Source: Rebecca billardiae RCC1528 (taxonomy: Eukaryota; Protista; Haptophyta). From it: DNA of 64,000 nucleotides. The notes beneath the pieces are model-generated. The model did no database searches. It was not told where the DNA came from and worked only from the letters and a program-made list of their open reading frames with translations. Numbering within the stretch: the first letter of the stretch is position 1; the number at the start of each line of letters is the position of its first letter. The position numbers and the translations under genes are program-made. Shown one piece after another: positions 17,818-35,966 of this stretch. The stretch spans positions 2,728,001 to 2,792,000 of the forward strand of contig OZ251225.1 in the NCBI GenBank assembly GCA_965240325.2, given 5' to 3'.

Positions 17818-18143
17818 GTCAAAGGGTGAAGAGAGCGACAGGGCCGTGAGGCCCGAGAGCGTGACGAGGGGGGCGAGGATGCCCCGAGGGACGGATGTTC
17901 GACTGATGCAATGCGAAGCGGTACGAACTGAACGAGCCGGTCACTAGGGGGGCATCCGACAGTCCTAGGACCGTGTAGGAGGCACTGATAGCCATCAACG
18001 GGTAAGTCGTGAAATGAACCATGATGGGAGTAAGTGTGATGCCGACCTGATAATGAGAGTCGGCGTATGTGGTGTCCAGTGACGGTTGGTGATCCGGGTG
18101 TGTACGCACAGGAGAGCGAGTCCGGTAACGTTGGATCTTGACA
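17817..18143 (-). repeat. 5' LTR of the copia element
   Basis: No difference from 11468-11794 found by eye. Confidence 0.95.
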
Positions 18144-18448
18144 ATCATCATCGCGATGATTGTCGTCGTCGCGTCATAAATCGTAGTCGTCATCTGCTGC
18201 TGCTAGCAGTAGCAGCTAGATATCGTCGTCGTCCTCGTCACGTCCTCATCATCAGATGACTGTCTCAGCATCACTTTAAGGACATATGAGCATATATATA
18301 TATATATATCTTTCTAAGCTGCATCATGTCCGCATGTCGTCGTATCATCATTATTATTTATTTATTGCTGATGAACAGCATCAATGATACAATGACGACG
18401 GTCGATCGCGCAACCGCTGCCCCTGCGCGCTGTATTAATAGTGATGTC

Positions 18449-18449
<1 letters not shown>

Positions 18450-18530
<81 letters not shown>
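18450..18530. repeat. (TA)n microsatellite, ~40 units
   Basis: Read directly. Confidence 0.95.
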
Positions 18531-18532
<2 letters not shown>

Positions 18533-19801
18533 TGGCCCGCGGTGCAGGGCGGAGCGCGCAGCGTGGAGCCCGCACCAGCGGGCCCGAACCACGTTTCAAA
18601 AAGATCTTTGATCAAGAAAAAAGGGACGGGGGGCGATTTTTAGGGCTGGCGGAGACCGAGTTTCGAGTTTTTGAGATCGCATAGAGAGGTCTATTAGGCC
18701 GAAAAACACCGCATCCACGATATTCCCTAAGTAATAAAGTGCGATCTGGACGTCAGCCGGACGTGACTTTAGCGTAACGGTTCGTTACGAGCGAATCGTA
18801 TTCGTCGTCCCGGATCGCGTGACGTCCGGACTGGGCCACATCCGGATCCGCGGGATCGTCGGAGGTGACGTGCCCCGGCACGACTAGTGGCGGATGCGGG
18901 ACGGCGCCTGCACGTGCCTCCGGACCCGCCTCCCGCTTGCTGCTCACGCAGTCAGCTGCGACCGTGGCGCATGATCGCAGAAGCAGTGCCGGCAGTACGG
19001 CCTGCATCAGCTAGTGCCGCGCCGTCGTGGCGCGCGCGGTACGGTTGCGCGTTTGCAGCGCTCGCCGGCTCGGCGACGGCACGCGCGTGCGGCTCAGGTG
19101 TGTCAAATGCGGTCTCGTCGGCGCGCTTTCGCCTGCCACCTCGTGCACCCGTGCCGCCAGTTTCATCGTCTTCATGAGGACTGCTGCTGCTGTCGCCATC
19201 CGCTCTCCATCACCCCGAGTCGCGCGGCGCGCGCGGTAGGCACTAGGGCAGGGCGTACGGTCACTCACCCGTGCAACGGGTCAAGTGGCCAGAGTACGTC
19301 TGGTCGTTGGCTGGCACGAGCCGCAGCGCTAAAGCACCCTGCTGTCACACCCGACTCCTTCAGTACTCCGAGCTCCGCGGCACGACTCACTCGGCACGAT
19401 CGCGGACGGGTCGGATATCCGAGCTGATCAGCCAGAGTTGGACACATAAGTTTGGCAGCTGCTACTAGTAGTAATTCCGATGCCGATGGCACGATCGCGG
19501 ACGGGTCGGATCCGAGCTGATCAGCCAGTTGGACATTTGGCAGCTAGTTGTCAGACGGACGTCCGATTTGACGACCGGTGCCGGGTGCGGTCTCAGGTCC
19601 GCTGCTGTGATTGTGTGAAGTGTGTTAAATGAGTCTCGCGGTCGCGCAGGCAGGGCGACGGTCGGACTAATAGCTTCAGTCATCTCAGAACCGACTTCAA
19701 CTGGCGAACTGCCACTACGGCGGAGAGCCGCGATTGCACGGCCACCGCGGGCCCCCAACTGCGTTGATTCTATGCAGAAAAGGACCGCGGAACGCGGTCA
19801 T
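18531..19801 (+). mobile_element. Non-autonomous Helentron/HINE-like element, family 2
   Basis: 5' subTIR GGCCCGCGGTG at 18534-18544 and its inverse CACCGCGGGCC at 19743-19753. Then CAACTGCGTTG, a terminal hairpin GACCGCG-GAA-CGCGGTC (19783-19799) and AT. Same layout as the 36207 and 55287 elements. Confidence 0.6.
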
Positions 19802-19997
19802 ATACTCGATCAGTATGACCAGCAGCGTGCGCAGCTGCTAACTGATACGCATCAGACTTCATGAGTTCAGACTGTTCAGAGTGCTTTCAGATATGAGTCG
19901 CTCGTGACGATATATCGACTACTGCTGCTGATGAGCCTGATGACCCCCGCCTTGTAGCAAGGCCAAGGGTTCGGCACGACCAACACTGGCAGGCTGC

Positions 19998-22900
19998 TCA
20001 CGGAAGAAATAGCATACTACTACCCTCGGCGCTCGAGCGCCCCGACTCACGCGCCGACTCCTCTTCGGCGCTTCGCTGCACCGCGGGCAGCAGGTCGCGC
20101 ACGACAGAGTTCACCAGTGGCGCGCCCGCGAGCTCGACCGCGTGGAGGAGCGCGCGCAGCCCGTCGTCCAAGCGCGACGCGCTCGCCGAGCTGCGCAGCG
20201 TGTCCGCCACGTGGAACGCGTCGAAGGCCGCGACCGCGCTGCGCCGCTCCTCCTCGGTGCGGCCGATCACCATCACCTCCACGTCCTCGACCGAGCCGCC
20301 CGTCGCGCGCCACGCGAGCAGCCCGCCCACGCACGCGAGCCGCTCGGTGAAGCTCGGTCCGACGACGCACAGCAGCCGGGCCGAACGGCACATCGCAACC
20401 ACGCTGTGCTCGAGGGCTTGCTGCCTGTCCAGGCTCGGGTCGGCCGAGATCGCGTCGAACCACACGCGCGGCCACGCGCCCGTGAGCGCGTGCTGCCGCC
20501 GCGCCCACAGCTGCAGCGCGCGCGCGCGCTGCTTGGGGTCATCCCGGTGCGAGTGGAGAATGAACACGCCGATCCGCTCCGGCGCGAGCGAGCGGTCTGC
20601 GGTCGGGTCGACCCGGGTGGTCGAGAGACTCATGTCGTACACCTGCGCCCAGTGCGGCGAGATGGTGCTCGACCTCGCGGCCCTCGTGGCGGAGGGGATG
20701 GAGGGCCACGCGAGGAGGCGGCACGCCGAGCGCAGCGGCTGCACGACCAGCGAACGGAGCAGCGGCCGGAGCCGCCAGCAGCGGCGCGGCTCGGCCGCCG
20801 TCGGCTCGAGCAGCTGGGCAACACCACGCTGCCGGCCGTCGCTCCCGTCGGCCACAGCAGTGGGCAGCTGAATCGTGCGTAGCGCTTCGGGCGAGAGCTC
20901 CGCGCCGCGCAGCACGCGTAGCTCCTGCGTGACGAGCAGCCGCGGCGCCCGCACCGCGCCGCCCTCGCCGTGGCCGATGAGCGGCGCCAGGGCCGCGCCC
21001 AGCCGGTCGGCCTCGGACACGGCCGCCGAGCCACACGCCGTGCGCGTGAGCATGGCGTGCGCGCGCGCGCGCGAGTCTGGCATTGCGTACAGCCACAGCA
21101 GGCCGAGCAGCAGCAGCCAAAAGATGGCGATGGCGGGCAGCATGGCTGCCGAGTCCGCTACGCCTTGGCGCCGCTCGTCGATGCACCGACCGAAGATGAA
21201 CGTCGCAGCGGGCATGCTCATGGTATGCGCGGTCAAGTGCGAGCACCACCAGAGCGCCTCGATGCGCAGCGTCTGCGAGGGCACCGGCGCAAGCTTACGA
21301 GTGCGAGCCCACACGTGCGCCAGCCCGAGCGCGAGGTACACAGCCACGCAGTTGTACACGATGAGCCGAACGCCGTTGGCCACGTGCATGGCGTCGGTGG
21401 CGGTCGTGCCGCAGAATTGGATGGAGCCTGGCTCGGCAGCGAGCATGCGCGGGATGAGCGGCGTTGTGATCATCAGTGTCGTGCCCAGGGCGATGAGAAG
21501 CAGCACCGTGTACACGGTTGTAGGGAGCCGGTGCGACTCGGTCGGCTGCAGCGCGAGTGTGATGAGCGTGTGCGAGAGCTGAGCCACCGTTGCAGTGGAG
21601 AGCCCGAACACGCCCCATGCGCCGCGCAGCCTCCCGGTCGCCGAGACGAACGCGTACCCACCAAAGACGAGCACGCTCAAAAGCATGCCGCTCAGCGCGG
21701 CCACGCGCGTCACGTACTCCAGGATCGCTCGCATCGTGAACACCGAGCTCTCGAGCAGCGCAATCATGTGCTCGGGGGATAGCACGCCGCTGCCAGCGTC
21801 GTCGTTCGGCCCGGCTGCCCGCAGGCCGCTCTCGCGGCGGCGCGCCCGTTCGGCAGACCTGCTCGCGATATTGGGCATGCCTTGCGACGTGCGCAGCTCG
21901 TGCTGGTCGTGCCGCTCGATCCTCGCCGTGAGCTGGCGCTGGAATGAGCTCGACGGGAGGCGGCGGCGGCTCGTTGCATCTGAAGGGGCAGCCGTGGTCG
22001 ACGCCGTTGCCCTGACCACATCATCTGCCAAGCAGTGGCGGCGCGGGCGCAAGGGCCGGCAGCACACGGCAGCGCAGGGCGCGAGGTGAGCCGGCGGCCG
22101 CGCGGAGGGCTCGCACGAGCGCGCGTCGCGCGCCACGGCGCCGCGCGCCCGCAGGCCGCACGCACGATACACGTTGCGCAGCAGCTGCATCACGAGCTCG
22201 ACGCCGACGGAATGCTCGGCGGTCAGGAAGAGCGCGTGCGCCGTGGCGGGCGTGCTGGGTGGCCTTCGGATGTCCGCGCGCGGGACGCGCGCAAAGGTCT
22301 CCTCGAGCCGCCCCGGCAGAGCGGCCATGAGCGCGCACACGTCGTACGGCTTCACAAAGCTGTGATTGTGATGAACACCGGGCACCGCGCGCGCACGGCG
22401 CGGAGCGCGGGGCAAGCATGCTGATCAGACAGGCTCGGCATGACATGCAGAGAGGTGCGGCGCATGCCGTGAGGGCGTGCGCGCGCCGGCGCGTGGCGGA
22501 GACCCGAGCGCTCGCGCGGCGCGCACCCGTTCAGGTGCCTGAGCATGTTCTCATCCGTGCCCAAGCCGTCGAGGCCGCGCGCCTCGAACTCGGCCGCGCC
22601 CACGCCGCAGAAGGTCTCAAAGTACCACTGCTTGGTGCAGCGCGCGGGCAGCTTGCCCGCGCACAGCCGCTGCCAGAGGCCCTCGAGGCCGAGGAACTGC
22701 GCATTGGCGAGGTAGGCCATCACCTGCGCGGCCAGCGATGCGCGAGTCGTGCCGTGAGAAGCAGTCCGGTCGTGAAATCACGGTGAGGGCTGGCTGATAA
22801 GTGTACAACACTCGCCATCGTCGACGGCCGCATGACCCACGGCCGCAGTCGAGAACGGGCGCGCGCGGGACGAACTGGTGCGCGCGCGCGGCGCACGCGC

Positions 22901-23568
22901 GCGCGCACCGGTGAGTTCGTGCGCTCGGCGAAGGATCGCGCGAGCTGCATGGGCAGCAGCGGCACCGCGTGTCGGCTCACGGCGGTGAGCGGCATCCCAT
23001 GCCAGAAGCAGAACGAGTACACGTCAGCGGCTGCGTCGCGGTCGAGCTCGTTGTTGGCGGACGAGTCGGGCTTCCAGCTGCTCGTGGCCTCGTCGTACGT
23101 GAGCCCGGCCTGCACGACCACGCGCGCCACCTTGCGCAGCACCAGCGTCCGGTCCGCCAAGATGGCATCCGCCAAGTCGCGCAAGCTCGAGATGCACACG
23201 ATGTACACTGACCCATTGCTCGCGGACTCGAGCGTGCTCATCAGAGCGCCGTGGCCATCGGGCTCGACGCGCGCTCTGTCGACGGCATCGAAGCCGGGAA
23301 GAGCGAACTCGTGCGGGGCGGGCTCGTACGCCGTCCCTTCCGAGCCCGCAGCCACTGGCACGGCGTGCGAGCCGATCGCGTCGAGCAGGCAGCGCGCGAG
23401 CTGCGCACGCCGCTCAGCCTGGCCGCCTCCGTTCGCGATGACGAGCCGCAGGTTCACATCGCCGCGCTTGTGCAGCGTGCCCGCGATGAGGATGGCCTTG
23501 ACGTCGTCGGGATCCGGGCCGGGGTCCGTGATCAGCACGATGTTGCGCGCGCTCTTCGCGGGCCACAT
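19998..23568 (-). CDS. Fusion protein: nucleoside-hydrolase (IU-NH)-like domain, ~5-6 TM, TIR-like domain; join(23568..22909,22723..22527,22359..22166,22024..19998), ~1025 aa
   Basis: N-terminal IVLITDPGPDPDD, LVIANGG, ISSLRDLA, ANNELD, PYD. Three GTGCG..AG introns keep the frame (3078 nt in total). Hydrophobic helices follow, then VFILHSHRDD...PRVWFDAIS...RSARLLCVVGPSFTERLAC, which is TIR_2-like. Confidence 0.7.
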
Positions 23569-23874
23569 CCTCGAGAGATGGGGCAAAGGAATCAAGGGGG
23601 GTGATGACTTGGGGTGATGTTGATCAGGTCATGAACAGGTCGATCGAGGATCTTCTCAAATCGCCTCGCTGATGATTCCCGGAGCACATACTTGATGATG
23701 ACGAATCTGCAGTGATTAATATGTCTGGCCTAAGCCTCGTGGTATGTTCGTACCCGCCTCGCTATTCACCAGCTATCATACCTGGTAAGTCGATCTTACA
23801 TGGGCGATTTGACAGCCCCGCCCACGCGCCACACCCTCATGACTCATCACCGTCAGGACCCCCACTCCCACTGG

Positions 23875-26498
<2,624 letters not shown>

Positions 26499-26719
26499 TG
26501 TGCCCGGGGCTGAGCCACTGGCCGGGGTCGACGAGCGAGCCTGGGCCGCGTGTCGGTGTGCCGGAAGCACGCGGCGTGCGCCGGGTCCGGAGCCCGTGGG
26601 GATTTTCCCGCCCGAGAGCGGGCGCGCGCCCGGCGCGAGGAAAAAGAAAAAAAGAAATGCCGCCGTGTCGAAAACGCGCGCGCCCGGATGCATCCGCGGT
26701 TGGCCCAGTGCGGATCGCG

Positions 26720-29700
26720 ATGCAGGCGCTGGGCGACAACCTTGGCGCCCTCGCCGGCGCCGTCCAGCCGCTGCTGAGCGGGCTGTGGCGCTCAGAGGAG
26801 GCGCGCCGCTTCGACGCGCTCTACGCGGAGGACTCCCACCGGCCTCTTGGCTGCACCATCCGCCAGCTCGAGCGGCGCAGCGTCTCCGTCAGGCGGCTGC
26901 GCGCCGCGCTCGCGTGCGCGCGCGCGCTGTGTGAGGAGGAGCTCTGGGTGTCGGCCGCGCCCGGGCGCAGCGGCGAGCCGCTCGAGCCGGGCAGGCTCAC
27001 CGTCCGCGACGTCGAGCACCACCTTTTCCGCCCGTGTACCAAGCAGCGCCGCCTCTCCTTCGCCGAGCAGATGCACCACTTTCCGCCGTCCGAGCCCGCG
27101 CTCTGGTGCGTCTCGTACGCAGGCGACTGCCCGATGGAGGAGCTGGTGGACTGCGTGGCCCAGCACGCGCACGATCGGCGCATCACCGAGGAGGCCGCGG
27201 TGTACTGGGTGCGTGCCGCGCCGCGCCGCGCGCGCCGCGCCACCCGTGCGCCGCCGCGCGCCGCGCCGCCGCGCGGCCGCGCGCCGCGCGCCGCGTGCCG
27301 CGCCCGCACCGGCCACCCTCCCCACCGGCCGGCCTCCCTCCTGCTTGTCCGCGCAGCTGTGGGCGTGCGCGTCGAACCCGTACGACAAGTTCGACCTCGA
27401 GTCGTACGTGACGGGCGCGCGCGCGCTGCGCACGCTCCCGTTCGCGCGCGCGCTGCGCACCGCTGACGGCGCGCTCAGTGTGCTGGACGGCCGAGGCGCT
27501 GCGCTGGGCCGCGCGTGGTGGGCGGTGGAGCTGGCCATCGCGGTCGGCCCGGATGCGGACGTGGACGCGGCGCGGCCGCTGGTCTCCAGCCGCAACGTGC
27601 TCACCGTCGACGCGCTCGCCACGCGGCGCAACTCCGCGCGCAAGGCGGCGCCCTCGCGACTCGAGACGAGCGGTCGTGGCCGGCGTCGGCGCGGCAAACA
27701 CGCCGCGGCGCGCGAGCGCGCGGAGGCGGAGGCCGCGGAGTTGGCGGGGCGGGCAGACATGGACACGACGCTGGCGCTGCTCGAGAACCCGCGCGCGCTG
27801 CACGACGTGTACGCGCCGATCTCCGAGGCCGACTGGGGCATGCGCGCCGTCGGCGCGCTCGACGGCCTTGGCCCCGTTGACGGCGGGCTCGAGCCAATCA
27901 AAGCGCAGCGCGAGCGGAGGTTTCCGCGAACGCTCGCGGCGCGCGCGCTCGACTTCGAGTGGGCGGCGGCGCGCGCGGGCGACGGCGGGCCGGCGGGGAA
28001 GCTCGACGAGAAGCGCGAGCTCTCGCGCCTCGTCGGCGACGAGGGCGCCGTCCGTGCGCTCGAGGCCACCGTCCGCGCGCGCGTCGCGAGTGTGGTTCTG
28101 CCGCGGCTGCTCTCGGCGCCACTGCCGGAAGGCGCGATGGCGCGGCGGATGGCGGAGGTGGGCGCGGAGGTGGACGCGCGGCGCGCGGAGGCGGGGGAGG
28201 ACGGCGGCGCCGAGGCGCGCGTGCTGGGCGCCACGCCGCCCGGCGGCGGCTGCGCGGCCGCGGCCTCGCGCCCGCCGCCCCCTGACAAGCTCCTTGCCAC
28301 CGCCATCGCCTTCGAGCTCGGTCGCTCGCGGCTGCGTACGGTGGCGCTTGGCTTCGAGCGGCACACGCTGCTGGGGCCGGCGCCGAGTACGGCGCTGGGC
28401 GCGGCGAGGGGCGGCTGGCTCCCCGGCGCGACGCTGGAGGAGCTCAGCATCACCGCGCTCGCGCTCCGCGGCCCCGCGCTCCGCGAGCTCAAGCGCGCGC
28501 TCGGCGCGTCCGCCGCGCCACTCGCAATCCTACGACTGACGCACTGCGGCCTTGACCCCGCGCACGCGCGCTCGCTCGGCAAGGGCATCGGCCGCGCGAG
28601 CTCGCTCAAGCTGGTCGACCTGCGGTGCGCGCCGCCGGAGCGCGCGCCCTTCCCCTCTTTGCGCGCCCGCGCGCGCGCCCGCTGCTGCGCTCAGCCGCGC
28701 GCCCTGCCCAGGCTGTCCGCAGCTGGACAGGGTGTGTGCGCAGGTGTGAGCCGCGCGCGGAGCTCACACACGCGCACACCCGCCCGCGCCGGGGCGCGCG
28801 CGCGCAGGAGCAACCGCATCGGGGACGCGGGCGCGGGCGCGGTGGGCGGCGCGCTCCGCGCGCACCCCGCAGTCGAGGTGCTCAACCTCGAGTGCGCGCG
28901 CGCCGCCCACCACGCCCGCGCCCGCGCCGCCGCCGCGGTTGCGCCGGCGGCTCCCGCGCGGCTGCTGCCGCCCAGCCTTGGCGCCTCTGCCACTCGCGCC
29001 GCCGTCGCCGGCCGCGCGCGCGCCACGCGCGCACTTACGCGCGCACCGGCGGCGCTCGCGCACGGCCGGCCGCGCGCGACCCGCGCAGGGACAACGACAT
29101 CGGCGACGGCGGCGCGGCGTCGCTCGGCGCCGCGCTCGCGTCGAACAGCGCGCTGATCGTCCTCGACTTGAGGTGCGCCGCGTGCGCCGTCCCGACTGGG
29201 CCGCGGCCGCGCGCCGCGCGCCGCGCGCCTGCGGTTGTCTGTGGACGATGTGCTCGCGCCCCTTGCATTCTTCCTTCTCGTGAGCTCAAGCATCATCTGC
29301 ATGGGCGTCCGTGTCACGCGGTGTCGGCCGGCGCCGCCGCTCTCCGAACCCGCCCGCTCGCCCTCGCCGTGCGCAGCTGCAACCGGCTGGGCAACAGCGG
29401 CGCGGCGAGCCTCGCGCGCGCCCTCGCCGCGCCCGCGAGCGCGCTCGAGGTCCTCGTCCTCGCAAACAACCGGATCGGCGACCCCGGACTCGAGGCGCTG
29501 TCCGGCTCGCTCAACGACTCGGCGACTCTTGCCGAACTCGACCTCCGAGGCAACAGACTGCTCGACGAGGGCGTGTGCGCGCTCGCGGACGCGCTCGTGG
29601 CCAACCGCACGCTGACGAACCTCAACCTGTCGTGCGCGCGCGTGCGCGTGCGCGCGCGGCGGCGGCGGCGGCTGCGAAGACGCGCGCGCCGGGAGGAGTG

Positions 29701-30664
29701 GGCGCGCCGAGCGCTCGGCGGACGGTGCACGCTCTGCGGCGCCGCGCCGCGCGCGCGCGCTGCCGTGACGCGCGCGCGCGCGCCGCGGTCCGCTGGTGCG
29801 CCGGCGCGGCTGCGCAGGGACAACGGCGTGGGCGACGAGGGCGCGCAGGCGCTGATGGACGTGATGCGCCGCACGGGCGGCCAGTCGGTCATCGCCTCCA
29901 TGTGCGCTGCGCGCGTGCGCGCTGCTGTGCGCCGCGGCCTCGCGCGCGCGCGGCCCCGCACGCACATGCGCTGACGGCGTGCGCGCACGGCGCGGCGCGG
30001 CGCTGCCTGCTGCTGTGCTGCCCTGTGGCTGTGCGCGCTGTTGCTACCCACCCGGCTGTTACCCACCCGGCTGCTACCCACCCGGCTACTACCCGGCTGC
30101 TGCCTACCCGGCTGCTACCCGGCTGCTACCCGGCTGCTACCCACCCGGCTGCTGCCCACCCGGCTGCTGCCGAGCAGGGTGAACATGTTCGGCGACCCGA
30201 CCAAGGAGCCGGCGCCGCAGCTGCGCCGCGCGGGGAGCCGCTCGAGCGCTTCGCTCGTGCGCTCGGAGAGCCGCACGCTCACGCGCTCGGAGAGCCGGAG
30301 CGCGCAGCAGGAGCTGCGCCGAACTGGCAGCCGCTCGGGCGCCGAGGGCGCGCGCCGCTCGCACGAGGTGCGGCGATCGCAGGAGAGCCGCAACGGCACG
30401 GAGAGCGTGGGCCGCTCGCAGGAGAGTCGCATGTCGTCCGAGTCGGCGGCGCGCGCGCCGCTCGTCTCGTTCAAGCTCACGCAGCCCGCGTCGGAGGAGG
30501 CGGGCGGCCTGCCGATGGAGCCGGCGGCGGGCCGGCCGCGCGGGCGCAGGGCGCGCACGCTCGTCAAGCTCAACCTGCGGTACAACTCGCTGACGGTCGG
30601 CGCGCAGAAGGCGCTGCGCACCGCCTGGCGGAGCTCGGGCCACCTGAGCGGGCTCTCGCTCTGA
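26720..30664 (+). CDS. TIR-like domain plus RNI-type LRR protein; join(26720..27208,27357..28624,28808..28891,29089..29172,29377..29631,29818..29901,30178..30664), ~916 aa
   Basis: WCVSYAG...YWLWACASNP...LSVLD...RAWWAVEL, then 28-aa LRRs (LxLxxNxIGDxG). Six GTGCG..CAG introns keep the frame (2751 nt in total). Confidence 0.75.
30042..30170. repeat. Intronic minisatellite, ~15-bp unit GCTACCCACCCGGCT and variants
   Basis: Read directly; lies inside intron 29902-30177. Confidence 0.85.
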
Positions 30665-30914
30665 GCGCCACGTTGAACGCGGCGGTGCAAAGTAGGAGCA
30701 CTGTCCTTTGCTCTTTGCATCTGCAGCGGCCCCGACGGGCGCCGAGCCGCCATCGTCAGAAGACGTCAACAGTTGTCGACCGGTCCGGACTTGTCAGGAG
30801 CCAGTCCGGCGCGCTGCAACAGCTAAAGCCGCCCCGCTCGGTCTGGGCGCGAGATGCAGCAGCACGCACGTCAGCGTGAGCGTGCCCCGACAGGCCTCGG
30901 TGCCATCTGCCGAG

Positions 30915-33900
30915 ATGCGTCGCCTCGGCGCGAGCGGCTCGCGCTGGAGCGTCGAGTTCCCACCGCCGCCCCCGCCGGCGCTCCTTGGCGCGATGCAGCC
31001 CTGGCTCGCCGCCCCCGACCTGCCCATCTCTGCCGCGGGGCGCACCGCCGCCGAGCTCCGCGCGCTGCTCCTGTCCTATGTCGACTGGAAGACAGCAATG
31101 GCCGCCGCGCCGCCGAGCGCGCGGCGGCGGCGGCGGCGGCTGGCGGCGGCGGCGATGCGGCGGTGGTGGACGCGCGCGACGCAGCGCCGTGTCTTCGTCG
31201 CCAAGCGCGCCGCGGCCTCCGCCGCCGGCCGCGTCGGCGACGCGATGCGCGCGTGGGCTGGGCAAGTGGCACGCGCGCGCCGCGCGTCGGCCGCGCGCGC
31301 GCTCGGCGACACGCGCAGCGCGGTGCGCCGGCGCGAGGCGCTGAGCCGCTGGCGCGCGGGCGCGCGACACGCCGCGCCCGCCGCGCGCCTGCTCGCCACC
31401 GCCTTCGCCGCGCGCCGCCGCGCCAGGCTCGCGCGCGGCGTGGCGGCGTGGCGCGTGGGCGGCGCGCGGCGCGCGGCCACGGCCGCGCGCGGCCGCGCGG
31501 CGCTGCGCGCGGCGGCGGCGGCGGCGCGCGGCCGCGCGGCGGCGCTCGTCGCGCGGTGGGACGCGGTGTGCGTCGGGCGCGAGCGCACGCGCGCCGCGCT
31601 GCGCACCGCCGCGCGCGTGCAGCTGGGGCGGCAGTGGCGTTCGCTGGTGACTGTGACCGCGGCCGCGGCCGCGGCGTCGGCGGATATGCGCGCGGCGGTG
31701 GAGGGCTCGGCGGCGCGCGCGCGGCTGGCGGCGGCGCGCGCGCTGGCGAGCTGGGCCGCGCGCTCGGGCGCGCAGCTCCGCGCGCGCACCGCCCTCGACC
31801 GCGGCCTCCGCCTCGCCGCGTGCCGACAGCTCGCGCGCGCGCGCGCGCACCGCGCGCCGCCGGCCGCGCCCGTGCCACCTGCGGAATGGCAGGCAGCGGT
31901 TGCAGCGGAGCTGCGGCTCGGCGCGCGGCTGCGGCCGGTGACGCGCGCGCGGCTGCTCGCGGCGTGGGTGCCGGCGTGGCGCGCGCTGCGCCGCGCCGCC
32001 GACGCGCGCGCGCGCGTGCGCGCCGAGCGCGCCGCCGCGCGCGCGCACGCGGCCGGCGGCGCGTGCGGTCGCGCGCTGCGCCGCTGGCAGCGCGCGCGGC
32101 GCGCGGCGCGCGCGGCCCTCGCCGATGCGCCGAGCGTGGCGCGCGCGGCGGTGCTCGGGCTGCAGGGCGCGCCCGCGGCGCTGCGCGCGTGGCGCGGCGC
32201 GCGCGCGCGCCGCGTGCGCCGAGCGCGCCGCGCGCAGCGCGCCGCCGAGCACGCCGCGGCGGCGGCGCTCGCGCGCGCGCTGCGCACGGCGCGCGTGCGC
32301 GGCGCGTGGGCGGCTTGCATGGCGACGCTGCGCGCGCGCGGCGCCGCGTGCGCGACGGCGCGCGCGGTGCAGCGGTGGGCGGAGGCGGCGCAGGAGGCGG
32401 TGGCCGCGGCGGGCGGCGACCCCGCCCTCGCCGCCGCGCGCGCCGCCGCCGCCGCGCGCCGCACCGCCGCGCGCCGCGAGCGCGCGGCCGCGGCGCGCGC
32501 GCGCGCGGCGCGCGGCGCGCGCGCGCGCGCGCTGCGCGCGTGGCGCGCCCGCGCGGCGCGCGGCGCGCGCGCGGCGGGCGCGGCGGCGGCGTTCGGCGCG
32601 CGCGCGCGCTCGGACGCGCTGCTCCGCTGGCACCGCGCCGCGAGCCTCTCTGCCGCGTGGCGCCGCGCCTTCGCGCACACGCGGCGCATCGGCCAGCGCG
32701 CCGGCGCCGCGCGCGCGCTCGGCGCGTGGGCGGCCGCGGCCGCGCGGCGCGGCGCAGCCGAGGCGGCGGCGCGCCGCGCGGCGAGCGCCGCGTGCGCGCG
32801 CTGGCGGTCGCGCGCGAGCGCGGCGGCGGTGGACAGCGCGCGCTCGCAGGCGACCACCGCGACCGCCATCGACGCCGCCGTGCGCGCCGCGCTGCGCACG
32901 TGGCGCGGCGGCTGCGCGCTGCGCGCCGCCGCCGCGCGCGAGCGGCTCGCGCGCTTTTCGCGACGTCGCGAGGCGCGCGCGGCGCGGCGCGCGCTCGGCG
33001 GCTGGCGCGCGCGCGCGCGCGCGGCGCGGGCGGAGGCCGCGCGCGTGGCGGGCGGCTCGCGCGTGCTGGGCGTGCGCCGCGCGGCGCGCGCGCTGCGCGA
33101 GTGGCACGCGCGCCGCGCCGCCGCCGACGACGCCGCCATCACCGCCGCCGAGCGCGCGCGCCGCGCCGCGTGCGCGCGCGCCGCGGCCGCGCTGCGTGGC
33201 TGGCGCGCGTGCACGGTGCACACTGCCACTCGGCGCGAGGGCGCGCGCGCGCTCGCGCGCGCGCGCGCGGCGCGCGGCGCGATCCGGCGGTGGGCCCGCT
33301 TCGCCGACTACGCCGTGTACGAGCGCCGCGTCTCCGCGCACCAGCGCGCCATCGGCGCGATACTGCATGAGCGGACGCTGCAACGCGCGCGCGTCGCGTC
33401 GCGCGCGCTCGACGCCGCGGCGCGCGCCGCCGCGGCCGCAGGCGGCGGCGGCGGCGGCGGCGAGTGGGGCAGCGGCGAGTGGGGCGGCGAGCTGGGCGAG
33501 TCGGCCGAGTCGAGCTGCGGCGGGCCGCTCGCCGCCGCCGCAGCCGCCGCGTCCACGCTCGCCGACCTCGCCGGCGGCGCCGCGCCGCGCACGCCTGCAA
33601 CCGCCGCGCACGCGCACGCGCACGCGCACGCGCCGCCGCCGCCGCCGTCGGCGGTTTTGGCCCGATTCGCGCCGCAGTCGGCCGTCGCCGCGTCGACCGC
33701 GGCGGCGCACGCGGCGCTGAACGCGCGCTCGCCGCCGTCGCGCGCAACGCCCGCGCGCAACGCGCGCACCGCCGCGCACGCCGCGCGCACACCATCGAGC
33801 GCTGCGCGGTTGTCGCCGCCGCTGCCGGCGCCGCCGGCCGCGGCGGGCGGCAGCGCCGCGCTGGCGGAGTTGGCGCGCGCGGCCGAGGCGGCGCGGCGCG

Positions 33901-35966
33901 CGGCGGATCTGGCGGCGGCGGAGCGCATGCGGAACGAGGCGGAGGCGGCGGAGGCGGCGACGCGGCGGCGCGAGCAGGAGGCATTGGCCGCCGCCGCCGC
34001 CGCCGCCGTCGCTGACGCGGAGGCCGCGGCGCGCGACGCGCGCAGCCGCGCAGCCTCGGAGCAGCGCGCGGCTGCGGAGGCGGCGGCGGCGCGCGGCGCC
34101 GCCGACGCGGCCGCGGACCAGGCGCGCGCGGAGCTGGCGGCGCAGGCGGCGGAGGCGGAGCGGCGGCTGCGCGTCGCGCTCACCGCTGCAGCACAGGCTG
34201 ACGCAGGCGCCGCTGAGGCGGTCTCGCGCCGCGCAGCCGAGGAGGAGGCGGCGGCGGCCGCGGCCGCGGCGCGCGACGCGGCCGCGGCCGACGCAGCCAC
34301 CGCCGTTGCGCGATTTCGGGCGACGGCGGAAGCGGAGGCGGAGGCGGCGAAGGCGGCAGCGGCGGCGCGGCAGGAGGCGGAGGCGGCGGCGGCGCGCGCG
34401 CGCGCGGACGCCGCCGCGGCGCAGCGTGCCGCAGCCGCCGCCGCGGCCAAGGCGGCGGAGGAGGTGGCGGCGGCGAAGGCGGCAGCCGAGGCGGCGCGCG
34501 CCCACGCCGCCGCCGAGGCGGAGGCCGCCGCGGCCGCGGCCGCGGCGCGCGGCGCGGCGGAGGCGGAGGCGGCGCGCAGCGAGGCCGAGGCGGCGGCGGT
34601 TGTGCGTGTCATGGGCACGCCGCCGCCGCCGCAGCCGCCGCCGCAGCCGCGCCCGACCCACGCCGAGCACCGTCACTCGCCCAACGCTCGCCCGTCGCCG
34701 CCGCCGCCGTCGCAACCGCCGCCGCCCTCGCGGCTACCGCAGCCGCCGCAGCCGCCGCGCGCCGCCGCGCGGCCAGCGCGCGCGCCCGCGAGCGCCGCGC
34801 CGCGCGAGCCCGCTGCCGAGGTCGCGGCCGGCGCGGCGGCGCGCGCGCGCGCCGACGCGCTCAATGCCGCCGCCGACGCGTTCGGAGCCCGCCCGCGCTC
34901 GGACTCGGGTGGGGCGGCCGCGGCGGCTGCGGCCGCGCCGGGCGGCGCGCCGAGCGGCGCCCCGGGCACGCGCGCGGCGTGGGAGGCGCGCGCGGCCGCT
35001 GGCCCCGCATCGGCGATGGCGGCGCCGCCGCACACGCCGGTGTCACGCGCCCGCGAGTCGACACTCTCACTCCCTCTCTCCGCGCCGCGCGAGCCCGCGC
35101 CGCCCGCGCCCGCCACGCGCCTGAGCGGCGGCGGTGCCGCCGGCGGCGCGGCTGAGGCGATTGCGCCGCCGCCGCCGCCGGGCGGCGGCGGTGCGGGCGG
35201 CGGCGGCGGCGGCGCGGCGCACGGGGCGAGCACGCCCGCGACGCTCAAGCCTGCGCACACGGCGCTCGCGCACGCCGCGCTCAGCGGCACAGTGCCCCGC
35301 CCGCCCCAGTGGCTCTCGACTCCGCGCTCGGAGCGCCAAGCTGCCCTCGCCGCGCTCGCCGCCGCCGGCTCGCCGCCGGCCGAGCTGGCGACGCGCGGCC
35401 GAGTGCTCATGGCGGCGCGCTGGGCGCACAACGCGGCGATCCACCGAGAACTGGGTCAGGTGGCACAGGAGGTGGAGAGCGCGGAGCGCGAGCTCGTCGC
35501 GGCGCTCGCGCCCACGCCCGGCGCGGCCGAGGCCGACGCGCACGCCGCCCCGGCCGCACTGGGCTTGCCACGGCAGTGGGCGCCCGCGGCCGCGCACGCT
35601 AGCGCGGGCGCGCCTTCCAGCGCAGACGCGCCCGCCGCGGCGCGCGCGAGCGCGCTGCAGGCGTGGCGGCAGCGCTTCCACGCGGCGACGGAGCTGGAGG
35701 AGCGCGCGCTGCGGCACTACCTCACCGTGCACGCGCGCGCCGAGCGCCGGCGCGCGCTCGTCCTGTGGCTCGTGCGCACGGCGGAGGCAAAGGCCACACG
35801 CCGAGAGCTCGATCTCGAGCGCGCGCAGGGCCACCGCGCACCCGGCTCGCGCTCGGGCTCGGTCGGCTCGGGCTCGGCGAGCCGGCGCAGCAGCGCGCCG
35901 CTCTCGCCCGACGCGCAGTCGGCGGCGATGCCGCAGCTCGGCGCGGAGTACACATTCGTCGTGTGA
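30915..35966 (+). CDS. Large Ala/Arg-rich helical protein with Sfi1-like LxxW repeats, a coiled coil and a Pro-rich region
   Basis: Many periodic L-R-x-W-R/H motifs (LRRWQ, LRAWR, LLRWH, LRTWR, LREWH, IRRWA), then an AE-rich coiled coil. Start uncertain (30915 or 30993). Confidence 0.55.
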   Translation: MRRLGASGSRWSVEFPPPPPPALLGAMQPWLAAPDLPISAAGRTAAELRALLLSYVDWKTAMAAAPPSARRRRRRLAAAAMRRWWTRATQRRVFVAKRAAASAAGRVGDAMRAWAGQVARARRASAARALGDTRSAVRRREALSRWRAGARHAAPAARLLATAFAARRRARLARGVAAWRVGGARRAATAARGRAALRAAAAAARGRAAALVARWDAVCVGRERTRAALRTAARVQLGRQWRSLVTVTAAAAAASADMRAAVEGSAARARLAAARALASWAARSGAQLRARTALDRGLRLAACRQLARARAHRAPPAAPVPPAEWQAAVAAELRLGARLRPVTRARLLAAWVPAWRALRRAADARARVRAERAAARAHAAGGACGRALRRWQRARRAARAALADAPSVARAAVLGLQGAPAALRAWRGARARRVRRARRAQRAAEHAAAAALARALRTARVRGAWAACMATLRARGAACATARAVQRWAEAAQEAVAAAGGDPALAAARAAAAARRTAARRERAAAARARAARGARARALRAWRARAARGARAAGAAAAFGARARSDALLRWHRAASLSAAWRRAFAHTRRIGQRAGAARALGAWAAAAARRGAAEAAARRAASAACARWRSRASAAAVDSARSQATTATAIDAAVRAALRTWRGGCALRAAAARERLARFSRRREARAARRALGGWRARARAARAEAARVAGGSRVLGVRRAARALREWHARRAAADDAAITAAERARRAACARAAAALRGWRACTVHTATRREGARALARARAARGAIRRWARFADYAVYERRVSAHQRAIGAILHERTLQRARVASRALDAAARAAAAAGGGGGGGEWGSGEWGGELGESAESSCGGPLAAAAAAASTLADLAGGAAPRTPATAAHAHAHAHAPPPPPSAVLARFAPQSAVAASTAAAHAALNARSPPSRATPARNARTAAHAARTPSSAARLSPPLPAPPAAAGGSAALAELARAAEAARRAADLAAAERMRNEAEAAEAATRRREQEALAAAAAAAVADAEAAARDARSRAASEQRAAAEAAAARGAADAAADQARAELAAQAAEAERRLRVALTAAAQADAGAAEAVSRRAAEEEAAAAAAAARDAAAADAATAVARFRATAEAEAEAAKAAAAARQEAEAAAARARADAAAAQRAAAAAAAKAAEEVAAAKAAAEAARAHAAAEAEAAAAAAAARGAAEAEAARSEAEAAAVVRVMGTPPPPQPPPQPRPTHAEHRHSPNARPSPPPPSQPPPPSRLPQPPQPPRAAARPARAPASAAPREPAAEVAAGAAARARADALNAAADAFGARPRSDSGGAAAAAAAAPGGAPSGAPGTRAAWEARAAAGPASAMAAPPHTPVSRARESTLSLPLSAPREPAPPAPATRLSGGGAAGGAAEAIAPPPPPGGGGAGGGGGGAAHGASTPATLKPAHTALAHAALSGTVPRPPQWLSTPRSERQAALAALAAAGSPPAELATRGRVLMAARWAHNAAIHRELGQVAQEVESAERELVAALAPTPGAAEADAHAAPAALGLPRQWAPAAAHASAGAPSSADAPAAARASALQAWRQRFHAATELEERALRHYLTVHARAERRRALVLWLVRTAEAKATRRELDLERAQGHRAPGSRSGSVGSGSASRRSSAPLSPDAQSAAMPQLGAEYTFVV

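Follow-up and report, generated by a model that had tools for sequence, protein, structure and literature searches.

The window analyzed here is a 64,000-nucleotide stretch of the haptophyte Rebecca billardiae RCC1528 (NCBI GenBank assembly GCA_965240325.2, contig OZ251225.1, positions 2,728,001 to 2,792,000 of the forward strand). On its minus strand, between 23568 and 19998, it carries a gene whose four exons and three GTGCG..CAG introns give a frame of 1025 codons, running from an ATG at 23568 to a TGA at 20000–19998 (220 + 65 + a split Gly + 64 + a split His + 674 codons). The gene consists of three parts: a nucleoside-hydrolase-fold domain related to the bacterial effectors XopQ and HopQ1, a multi-pass membrane block and a C-terminal TIR-fold domain (Table 1). 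We hold with high confidence that this is one gene encoding an integral membrane protein of 1025 residues, the gene structure, the domain identities and the fold being structural statements. An earlier reading of the DNA letters by themselves (the sequence-only reading) had joined three separately listed open reading frames (ORFs) through three GTGCG..AG introns into a frame of about 1025 residues, and had proposed a single gene made of these three parts. Exactly this model was recovered, with relatives colinear over its junctions and at least 48 of them sharing the architecture.

Table 1. Features of the fusion gene, in window coordinates and in the order in which they are transcribed.
Feature	Position	Strand	Remarks
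Exon 1	22909..23568	-	220 codons; begins with the start codon and covers the initial two thirds of the hydrolase domain (XopQ/HopQ1-like, nucleoside-hydrolase fold)
DPGPDPDD motif	23503..23526	-	non-canonical DxxxDxDD calcium/ribose-binding motif, aligned to XopQ TDPNKDPDD
Intron 1	22724..22908	-	185 nt, GTGCG..CAG; if retained, stop at 22720–22722
Exon 2	22527..22723	-	hydrolase-domain segment YLANAQFLGLEGLWQRLCAGKLPARCTKQWYFETFCG
Intron 2	22360..22526	-	167 nt, GTGCG..CAG; if retained, stop
Exon 3	22166..22359	-	C-terminal part of the hydrolase domain, including KPYD
Intron 3	22025..22165	-	141 nt = 47 codons, in frame, stop-free, GTGCG..CAG
Exon 4	19998..22024	-	674 codons and TGA; linker, membrane block, linker, TIR-fold domain
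Membrane block	21084..21710	-	exon-4 residues ~105–313; hydropathy scan
TIR-fold domain	20043..20576	-	exon-4 residues 483–660; AlphaFold2 and fold searches
Gly codon at the TIR catalytic-Glu position	20322..20324	-	family motif LWCVxEL; window copy LACVGGL

The ORFs at 22720..23595 and 22352..22723 end at stops when intron 1 or intron 2 is retained, and exons 3 and 4 lie within a single uninterrupted ORF of 805 residues (19998..22415). Since intron 3 is in frame and free of stops, the hydrolase tail and the membrane/TIR part form one ORF whether or not it is spliced. Family searches were made exon by exon, and in an alignment of the window exons with the hydrolase domains of 20 relatives (alignment A2) the three exons, entered as separate rows, fall end to end. 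A family hidden Markov model (HMM) built without the window rows matched exons 1, 2 and 3 in colinear order, with E-values of 7e-93 (profile positions 5–224), 8e-34 (217–286) and 9e-12 (281–350 of 355). Relatives read without interruption over all three window junctions ('RT.CPVM.YLA.AQ', 'LNGFVKPYDV' and 'TYHEVV'), in agreement with the window readings SP/VMAYLANAQ at intron 1 and LNG/FVKPYDV at intron 2. The spliced reading at intron 3, NVY-H-DVVRATAS, agrees with the family 'TYH[ED]VVLAT', and the 47-residue insert that this intron would add is absent in all relatives compared. Among these relatives, P0050, an uninterrupted ORF of 1072 residues filling a 3288-bp contig, spans the junctions with 'RTDCPVMTYLANAQ', 'LLDGFVKPYDV' and 'AYHEVVLIT'; P0038 reads 'TYHDVVLATAS' over the last of them, and P0161, a complete ORF in the MMETSP1466 transcriptome of Pavlova gyrans, is likewise uninterrupted over the junctions. 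Between 'FVKP' and 'YDV', a further relative, P0163 (ENA, 1325 aa), has about 40 additional residues rich in Ala and Arg (alignment A2 columns ~370–408). They resemble an intron left unspliced in the gene call, a few codons from the position of window intron 2.

Exon 1 matches the Pfam family IU_nuc_hydro (PF01156) with 41.1 bits against a gathering cutoff of 34.2 (E-value 2.2e-10), which places the N terminus in the nucleoside hydrolase superfamily. The sole NCBIfam family that it matches is XopQ (NF041355), with an E-value of 1.3e-18 (66.9 bits, profile 53–254), and exon 2 continues this match colinearly (3.7e-4, 19.4 bits, profile 277–314). The solved structures closest to exon 1 are those of XopQ (4kl0, 4p5f and 7jlu, 3e-11), compared to 6e-5 or worse for canonical hydrolases; in the PDB search, exon 2 aligns to XopQ chain residues 252–288, and exon 3 by itself gave chance matches only when searched as a single sequence. 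The preference becomes pronounced with the family profile, which matches XopQ structures at 1.1e-40 over about 300 positions (profile 8–309), and the best canonical hydrolase at 2.5e-10 in its N-terminal half only (profile 11–184).

The metal-binding motif points the same way. The acidic motif TDPGPDPDD that the sequence-only reading had pointed out is present at 23503–23529, but it was taken for the DxDxxxDD of a classical IU-NH enzyme, and the sequence I-T-D-P-G-P-D-P-D-D instead spells DxxxDxDD. The latter is the motif of HopQ1-like proteins, and DxDxxxDD that of the classical enzymes (PMC11685791). The second Asp of the motif likely corresponds to XopQ D120 and HopQ1 D105. The KPYD Asp (22341–22343, exon 3) aligns with the Asp of XopQ 'LYD' (family profile 'fvkPydVvalltalp' against XopQ 'LNLYDPLTLLAALPGT') and is probably the residue of the HopQ1 D384 type. 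D105N and D384N together constitute the inactive HopQ1, and D120N is the catalytic mutant of XopQ (preprint, bioRxiv 10.64898/2026.06.15.732069). Both DxxxDxDD and KPYD are kept in the window copy and in most relatives. In two relatives, P0100 (DPGPGPDH/RPFA) and P0026 (AGGPDPDS/RPYG), DxxxDxDD and the KPYD Asp are lost together; this joint loss, set against the kept pair elsewhere, is consistent with both sites forming one catalytic unit. The motif begins at residue 15 of the protein, which leaves no place for a signal peptide. Thus the domain shows the two marks of the HLP/XopQ clade, namely the DxxxDxDD motif and a proximity to XopQ over canonical hydrolases that extends over the whole domain to the C-terminal Asp. 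Judged by these alignments, it is a relative of the XopQ/HopQ1-like clade, not an orthologue of XopQ, and the relation to nucleoside hydrolases stands at the level of the superfamily, not of the classical enzymes. PMC6019455 already places algal HopQ1-like proteins (Aureococcus, Thalassiosira, Emiliania) in a separate clade.

The fold of the C-terminal domain was modeled with AlphaFold2 from an alignment of 55 sequences (alignment A1). The model has a predicted local distance difference test (pLDDT) score of 95.3 and a predicted template modelling (TM) score of 0.89; a single-sequence AlphaFold prediction of the C-terminal 213 residues reached a pLDDT of 50.7 and was set aside for the alignment-based model. 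The top 50 matches of the model in the PDB are all TIR domains with Foldseek, and again all TIR domains with VIA-align, where the best Z is 11.7 to RPP1 (146 residues, root mean square deviation 3.7) and the TIR domains of RPPT, RUN1, AbTir, SPARTA, MyD88 and SARM1 follow with Z of 9–11.6 for 120–147 aligned residues. Fold searches of the ESM Atlas returned TIR_2, TIR and ThsB_TIR clusters with TM scores of 0.55–0.63, and those of BFVD returned generic viral TIRs only. The window copy also keeps nine of the nine nearly invariant positions of the domain in alignment A1. We conclude from the model that the C-terminal domain is a TIR fold of the flavodoxin-like type, as the sequence-only reading had expected.

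Sequence evidence for TIR identity is marginal. The domain has no Pfam or NCBIfam match (at E ≤ 1 for exon 4 and E ≤ 0.1 for the domain), the Pfam TIR models PF01582, PF13676 and PF08937 included, and a single-sequence PDB search with it gave chance matches only. Among the 55 sequences of alignment A1, Pfam TIR_2 matches three (best 0.0081) and Pfam HET (PF06985) two (best 0.0036), the window copy being matched by neither. The family profile reaches the TIR domain of SIGIRR in the PDB at 0.075, and one cluster member, from Diacronema lutheri, is labelled 'TIR domain-containing protein' by UniRef. A TIR and a HET-like reading would both fit the fold data.

The family consensus '...RLLLLxGPxxxxxLxCVxELYxW' mirrors the 'SxWCxxEL' of TIR domains. 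In the window copy this stretch reads RLACVGGL (20319–20342), with Gly at the position that, by motif and by helix position in the model, appears equivalent to the catalytic Glu, and with Ala in place of the common Trp/Arg before the Cys. The window copy therefore lacks the catalytic Glu of the WCxxE helix that marks an enzymatic TIR domain; the absence had been spotted beforehand and is borne out here. Most relatives keep it (32 of 55 in alignment A1, and 124 of 175, or 71%, in a larger set), and Gly at this position occurs in the window copy only, in both the 55- and the 156-sequence alignments. The history of the site was followed on a FastTree phylogeny of 156 C-terminal domains, which implies about 17 changes between Glu and non-Glu states. 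The window copy falls into a Glu-less clade (support 0.83) with five others, which carry Arg (P0001), Asp (P0029 and P0048) or Leu (P0100 and P0021). Its sister, P0001 (support 0.98), is 53% identical over the matched stretch and 49% in the domain alignment; as this sister at substantial divergence is also Glu-less, the Glu-less state has persisted. The earlier proposal that a non-catalytic TIR module controls the hydrolase may thus hold for the Glu-less subclade, but does not extend to the majority of relatives, which retain the Glu.

The membrane block between the two domains comprises, in a hydropathy scan, four strongly and two weakly hydrophobic helices, matching the five or six counted previously; relatives have four to six hydrophobic segments at the same place. 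It is the least conserved part of the protein, with a mean pairwise identity of 19% for the middle among 24 complete relatives, compared to 51% for the hydrolase and 34% for the TIR-fold domain. The block matches no family of Pfam or NCBIfam, its look-alikes in the Atlas are unnamed haptophyte clusters only (0.79–0.85), and iterated searches with it within the fetched relatives gave almost no matches. From these comparisons we take it for an anchor under weak constraint, and not for a recognizable channel. The block probably forms six transmembrane helices, which would place both ends of the protein on the same side. With six helices both end domains would be cytosolic, and the loop charges are roughly consistent with this topology.

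The architecture is not unique to this gene. With exon 4 as the query, phmmer run exhaustively gave 318 relatives at E ≤ 1e-3; a word-index protein search with the same exon had found none, which marks a limit of its sensitivity. When the hydrolase part of P0050 served as the query of a word search, 36 long proteins were returned. At least 48 database proteins carry a hydrolase domain, complete or cut, together with a TIR-fold domain and four to six hydrophobic segments in between. All family members with an organism name come from Pavlovophyceae, with at least nine loci in Diacronema lutheri and at least six in Pavlovales sp. CCMP2436, and with Pavlova gyrans as a further source. Both hydrolase motifs and the TIR Glu are intact in 20 of the 35 proteins with a complete hydrolase domain. 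The closest relatives of the window gene are 50–60% identical, and no locus was confirmed when metagenomes were scanned with exon 1. By sequence, the gene belongs to a large, rapidly evolving and uncharacterized family found in pavlovophyte haptophytes. No description of a hydrolase–TIR fusion was found in a full-text literature search, in keeping with the earlier statement that no characterized protein has the hydrolase–membrane–TIR architecture. The HLP paper of 2018 (PMC6019455) and the haptophyte TIR paper of 2025 (PMC12489294) cover one half each. As far as the literature was searched, the fusion architecture is new, and so is its confinement to a single algal class; the domains themselves are of known kinds.

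The G+C content of the window ranges from 0.53 to 0.87 in 2-kb bins. It is 0.68–0.71 over the coding region of the gene and drops to about 0.55 in the flanks (18000–20000 and 23570–23800), marking the intergenic edges. The upstream neighbor (24186–26693, minus strand) encodes a WD40 and Utp12 (Dip2/Utp12) protein with a run of about 32 glycines, apparently of a housekeeping, rRNA-processing type; nothing about it suggests that immune genes cluster beside the fusion gene. The family HMM detected the C-terminal domain nowhere else in the window, and no Pfam family matched at E ≤ 0.01 the one long ORF translated from 26342–27463 (plus strand)/26720–27540. Farther along, an ORF at 28625–29971 (plus strand) has leucine-rich repeats of the RNI type (Pfam LRR_6, 3e-12). 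The stretch at 30708–35966 (plus strand), with a G+C content of 0.79–0.87, contains an Ala/Arg-rich ORF of 1752 residues, matched in length by ORFs of the opposite strand.

Recent work on XopQ suggests what such a fusion may do. XopQ and its homologues are reported to hydrolyze, with high efficiency, the O-glycosidic bond of 2'-cyclic ADP-ribose (2'cADPR), yielding ADP-ribose (preprint, bioRxiv 10.64898/2026.06.15.732069); bacterial XopQ homologues are the only ones known to have this activity. According to the same preprint, 2'cADPR is a main product of plant and of some bacterial TIR domains, XopQ blocks TIR immunity both in plants and in type VI Thoeris, and XopQ and HopQ1, in a review of earlier work, showed no activity on standard nucleosides. 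The 'nucleoside-cleaving effector' of the sequence-only reading thus probably names the wrong chemistry, since the studied members of the HLP clade did not cleave ordinary nucleosides and reportedly act on the 2'cADPR bond instead. In the phylum of the window, TIR genes of Gephyrocapsa huxleyi have been linked to virus infection and resistance, and some of them encode multiple N-terminal transmembrane helices (PMC12489294).

The repeated fusion of an XopQ-clade domain with a TIR domain points to one class of NAD-derived nucleotides on which both may act. In the explanation that we judge best overall, and to which we give somewhat better than even credence, the gene encodes a membrane protein in which an XopQ-like glycohydrolase and a TIR domain serve one pathway for NAD-derived TIR-type signals. 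The mechanistic reading, a membrane-anchored handling of such nucleotide signals, is put forward tentatively, at rather less than even confidence. The XopQ/HopQ1-like domain would be a calcium-dependent glycohydrolase, as all of its predicted metal- and ribose-binding Asp residues are present. About six poorly conserved transmembrane helices would mainly serve as an anchor, and the TIR-fold domain would lie on the same cytosolic side. The TIR domain of the family may make or consume NAD-derived nucleotides, such as isomers of cyclic ADP-ribose, and the attached XopQ-like domain could bind or hydrolyze the TIR-type product. A TIR-type signal, probably one that serves immunity or a stress response, might in this way be both produced and terminated, or else processed further, by one membrane-bound polypeptide. 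In the window copy, the Gly-bearing TIR domain cannot be a Glu-dependent enzyme and would most likely be only an assembly or regulatory module, for instance by pairing with Glu-bearing paralogues, and the hydrolase would stay the active part. A role in defence or signalling, and with it the substrates, the topology and the division of labour, is something that we infer.

A number of observations weigh against this explanation. The 2'cADPR result is that of a preprint (bioRxiv 10.64898/2026.06.15.732069). The N-terminal domain is not called an XopQ orthologue because its scores (66.9 bits for exon 1 and 19.4 for exon 2) are far off the XopQ equivalog cutoff of 500 bits and because the Tyr of XopQ 'RAYNNATD' is not kept: the algal family consensus has Val at this place, and the window copy (SSANNELD) has Ala or a gap. 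This residue is, we presume, Tyr279 of XopQ, which is reported to be functionally important. Its loss means that the substrate specificity may differ from that of XopQ. With a TIR domain that lacks the Glu, the window copy could not follow a maker-plus-breaker logic within a single protein. Within its Glu-less clade, the hydrolase motifs of P0100 are degenerate and P0048 is without the motif region, which hints at relaxed constraint. The helix count may be five or six, and the placement of both domains on the same side hangs on it. Finally, the splice positions rest on homology, their transcript support coming from relatives and not from the locus itself.

This last point, together with the tendency of GC-rich DNA to yield long chance ORFs in all frames, could be taken to mean that a soluble XopQ-like hydrolase (exons 1–3) and a separate membrane/TIR gene have been joined by a chance frame, or that the gene model is an artefact. 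However, the hydrolase C terminus encoded by exon 3 shares its 805-residue ORF with the membrane and TIR parts, 48 relatives have both domains in one protein, including complete transcriptome ORFs, and three of three junctions agree with ORFs of relatives to the residue; we find this explanation barely credible. The protein might also be a membrane-anchored nucleoside salvage enzyme that cleaves N-glycosidic bonds, with a C-terminal domain that is structural or regulatory and takes no part in TIR signalling. The Pfam class IU_nuc_hydro, the calcium- and ribose-binding Asp residues and the missing catalytic Glu of the TIR-like domain would suit such an enzyme. Yet the family profile is far closer to XopQ than to canonical hydrolases (1.1e-40 against 2.5e-10) and only XopQ matches its C-terminal half, the DxxxDxDD motif is non-canonical, and XopQ and HopQ1 showed no activity on standard nucleosides in the review of earlier work cited above. 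Moreover, the C-terminal domain resembles TIR domains only, and most relatives keep its Glu. A salvage function thus seems quite unlikely.

A decaying paralogue, that is, a duplicate with little or no function left after loss of the Glu and of the Trp of the WC motif, would account for the Gly found in the window copy alone, for the Ala replacing the common Trp/Arg and for the clade members with degenerate hydrolase motifs. We rate it as possible but unlikely: the full frame of 1025 codons is open with three clean splice sites, the nearly invariant C-terminal positions and the hydrolase motifs are intact, and the nearest relative, P0001, is Glu-less as well. A HET-like module for cell death or self/non-self recognition, triggered by a hydrolase that acts as a ligand sensor and not as a signal-removing enzyme, is unlikely to a lesser degree and is partly compatible with the explanation that we favor. 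The family motif VWLDxLCAD (VWFDAISAD in the window copy) resembles the HET motif WIDxLCINQ, one Atlas look-alike cluster is auto-named as a HET fragment (0.95), two of the 55 sequences weakly match Pfam HET, and the family is multicopy and fast-evolving, with its numerous gains and losses of the Glu. The fungal HET domain executes incompatibility cell death. It is regarded as a remote homologue of TIR that suffices for cell death (PMC10197012). On the other side, Pfam HET does not match the window copy and TIR_2 matches are as frequent (three versus two), and the conserved catalytic residues of the hydrolase suggest catalysis over mere binding. No solved HET structure occurs among the fold matches, so that the fold data do not separate HET from TIR.

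A bolder form of the favored explanation, in which a membrane-bound, glycohydrolase-bearing protein handles TIR-type signals, is conceivable but doubtful. An endogenous membrane-bound TIR producer and an XopQ-type hydrolase would here be united in one polypeptide, XopQ-type, 2'cADPR-cleaving chemistry would have regulated TIR signalling from the host side in eukaryotes since ancient times and would not be a bacterial invention, and Glu-less copies would assemble with active paralogues, either as dedicated terminators of the signal or as decoys. If this were true, the fusion would provide independent 'Rosetta-stone' evidence for the link between XopQ and TIR, and would point to immune signalling by cyclic ADP-ribose isomers in a chromist alga. 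The natural fusion of an XopQ-clade domain with a TIR domain, found dozens of times in one algal class, is comparative evidence for one shared pathway. It suggests that haptophytes may have TIR-type nucleotide signalling with built-in turnover, in a phylum where the connection between TIR genes and virus resistance is very recent. The window copy, with intact hydrolase motifs and a TIR domain that lacks the Glu, should be useful for separating scaffold from enzyme roles.

Comparison with known systems places each part of the fusion beside a relative. The HET domain of fungi (PF06985) is a remote TIR relative that has a similar motif of the WxDxxC..Q type after the second strand and is likewise multicopy and fast-evolving. 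In contrast to it, only two of the 55 algal sequences show a weak Pfam match and the window copy none, the host is not a fungus, and the partner domains differ. Signal-degrading enzymes that form part of a signalling immune system, such as ring nucleases fused to effectors of type III CRISPR systems, offer a functional parallel: there, a single system senses or produces a nucleotide signal and also destroys it, as is proposed for the fusion. Their folds and organisms are unrelated to those of the algal protein, however.

The TIR domains of plant NLRs (RPP1, RUN1 and RPS4), of SARM1, of AbTir, of SPARTA and of Thoeris ThsB have the same fold as the algal domain, and the LWCVxEL of the family mirrors their SxWCxxEL. 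The window copy differs from them in having Gly for Glu and no Pfam TIR match, and in sequence it more closely resembles a family that is specific to haptophytes and has HET-like motifs. In addition, the algal domain follows a multi-pass membrane block and is fused to a hydrolase. Also from haptophytes are the TIR genes of Gephyrocapsa huxleyi, a member of the same phylum, which respond to Emiliania huxleyi virus (EhV) and are proposed to be producers of an immune signal; in some of the encoded proteins, several transmembrane helices precede a TIR domain whose Glu is conserved (PMC12489294). In that work the TIR genes are without additional domains and no fusion to a nucleoside hydrolase is mentioned, whereas the family of the window gene is documented only in Pavlovophyceae.

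The type III effectors XopQ, HopQ1 and RipB (of Xanthomonas, Pseudomonas syringae and Ralstonia, respectively) and the wider HLP clade are the best sequence match of the N-terminal domain, with which they have in common the C-terminal Asp and the calcium motif DxxxDxDD. The algal protein lies far below the XopQ equivalog cutoff and does not conserve the RAYNN Tyr. In the accessible text of PMC6019455, the algal sequences are trimmed to the hydrolase domain and the fusion is not mentioned. In contrast to the secreted effectors, the algal gene is a eukaryotic gene of the host genome, its product is without a type III secretion leader, and its hydrolase is joined in one protein with a membrane block and a TIR-fold domain.

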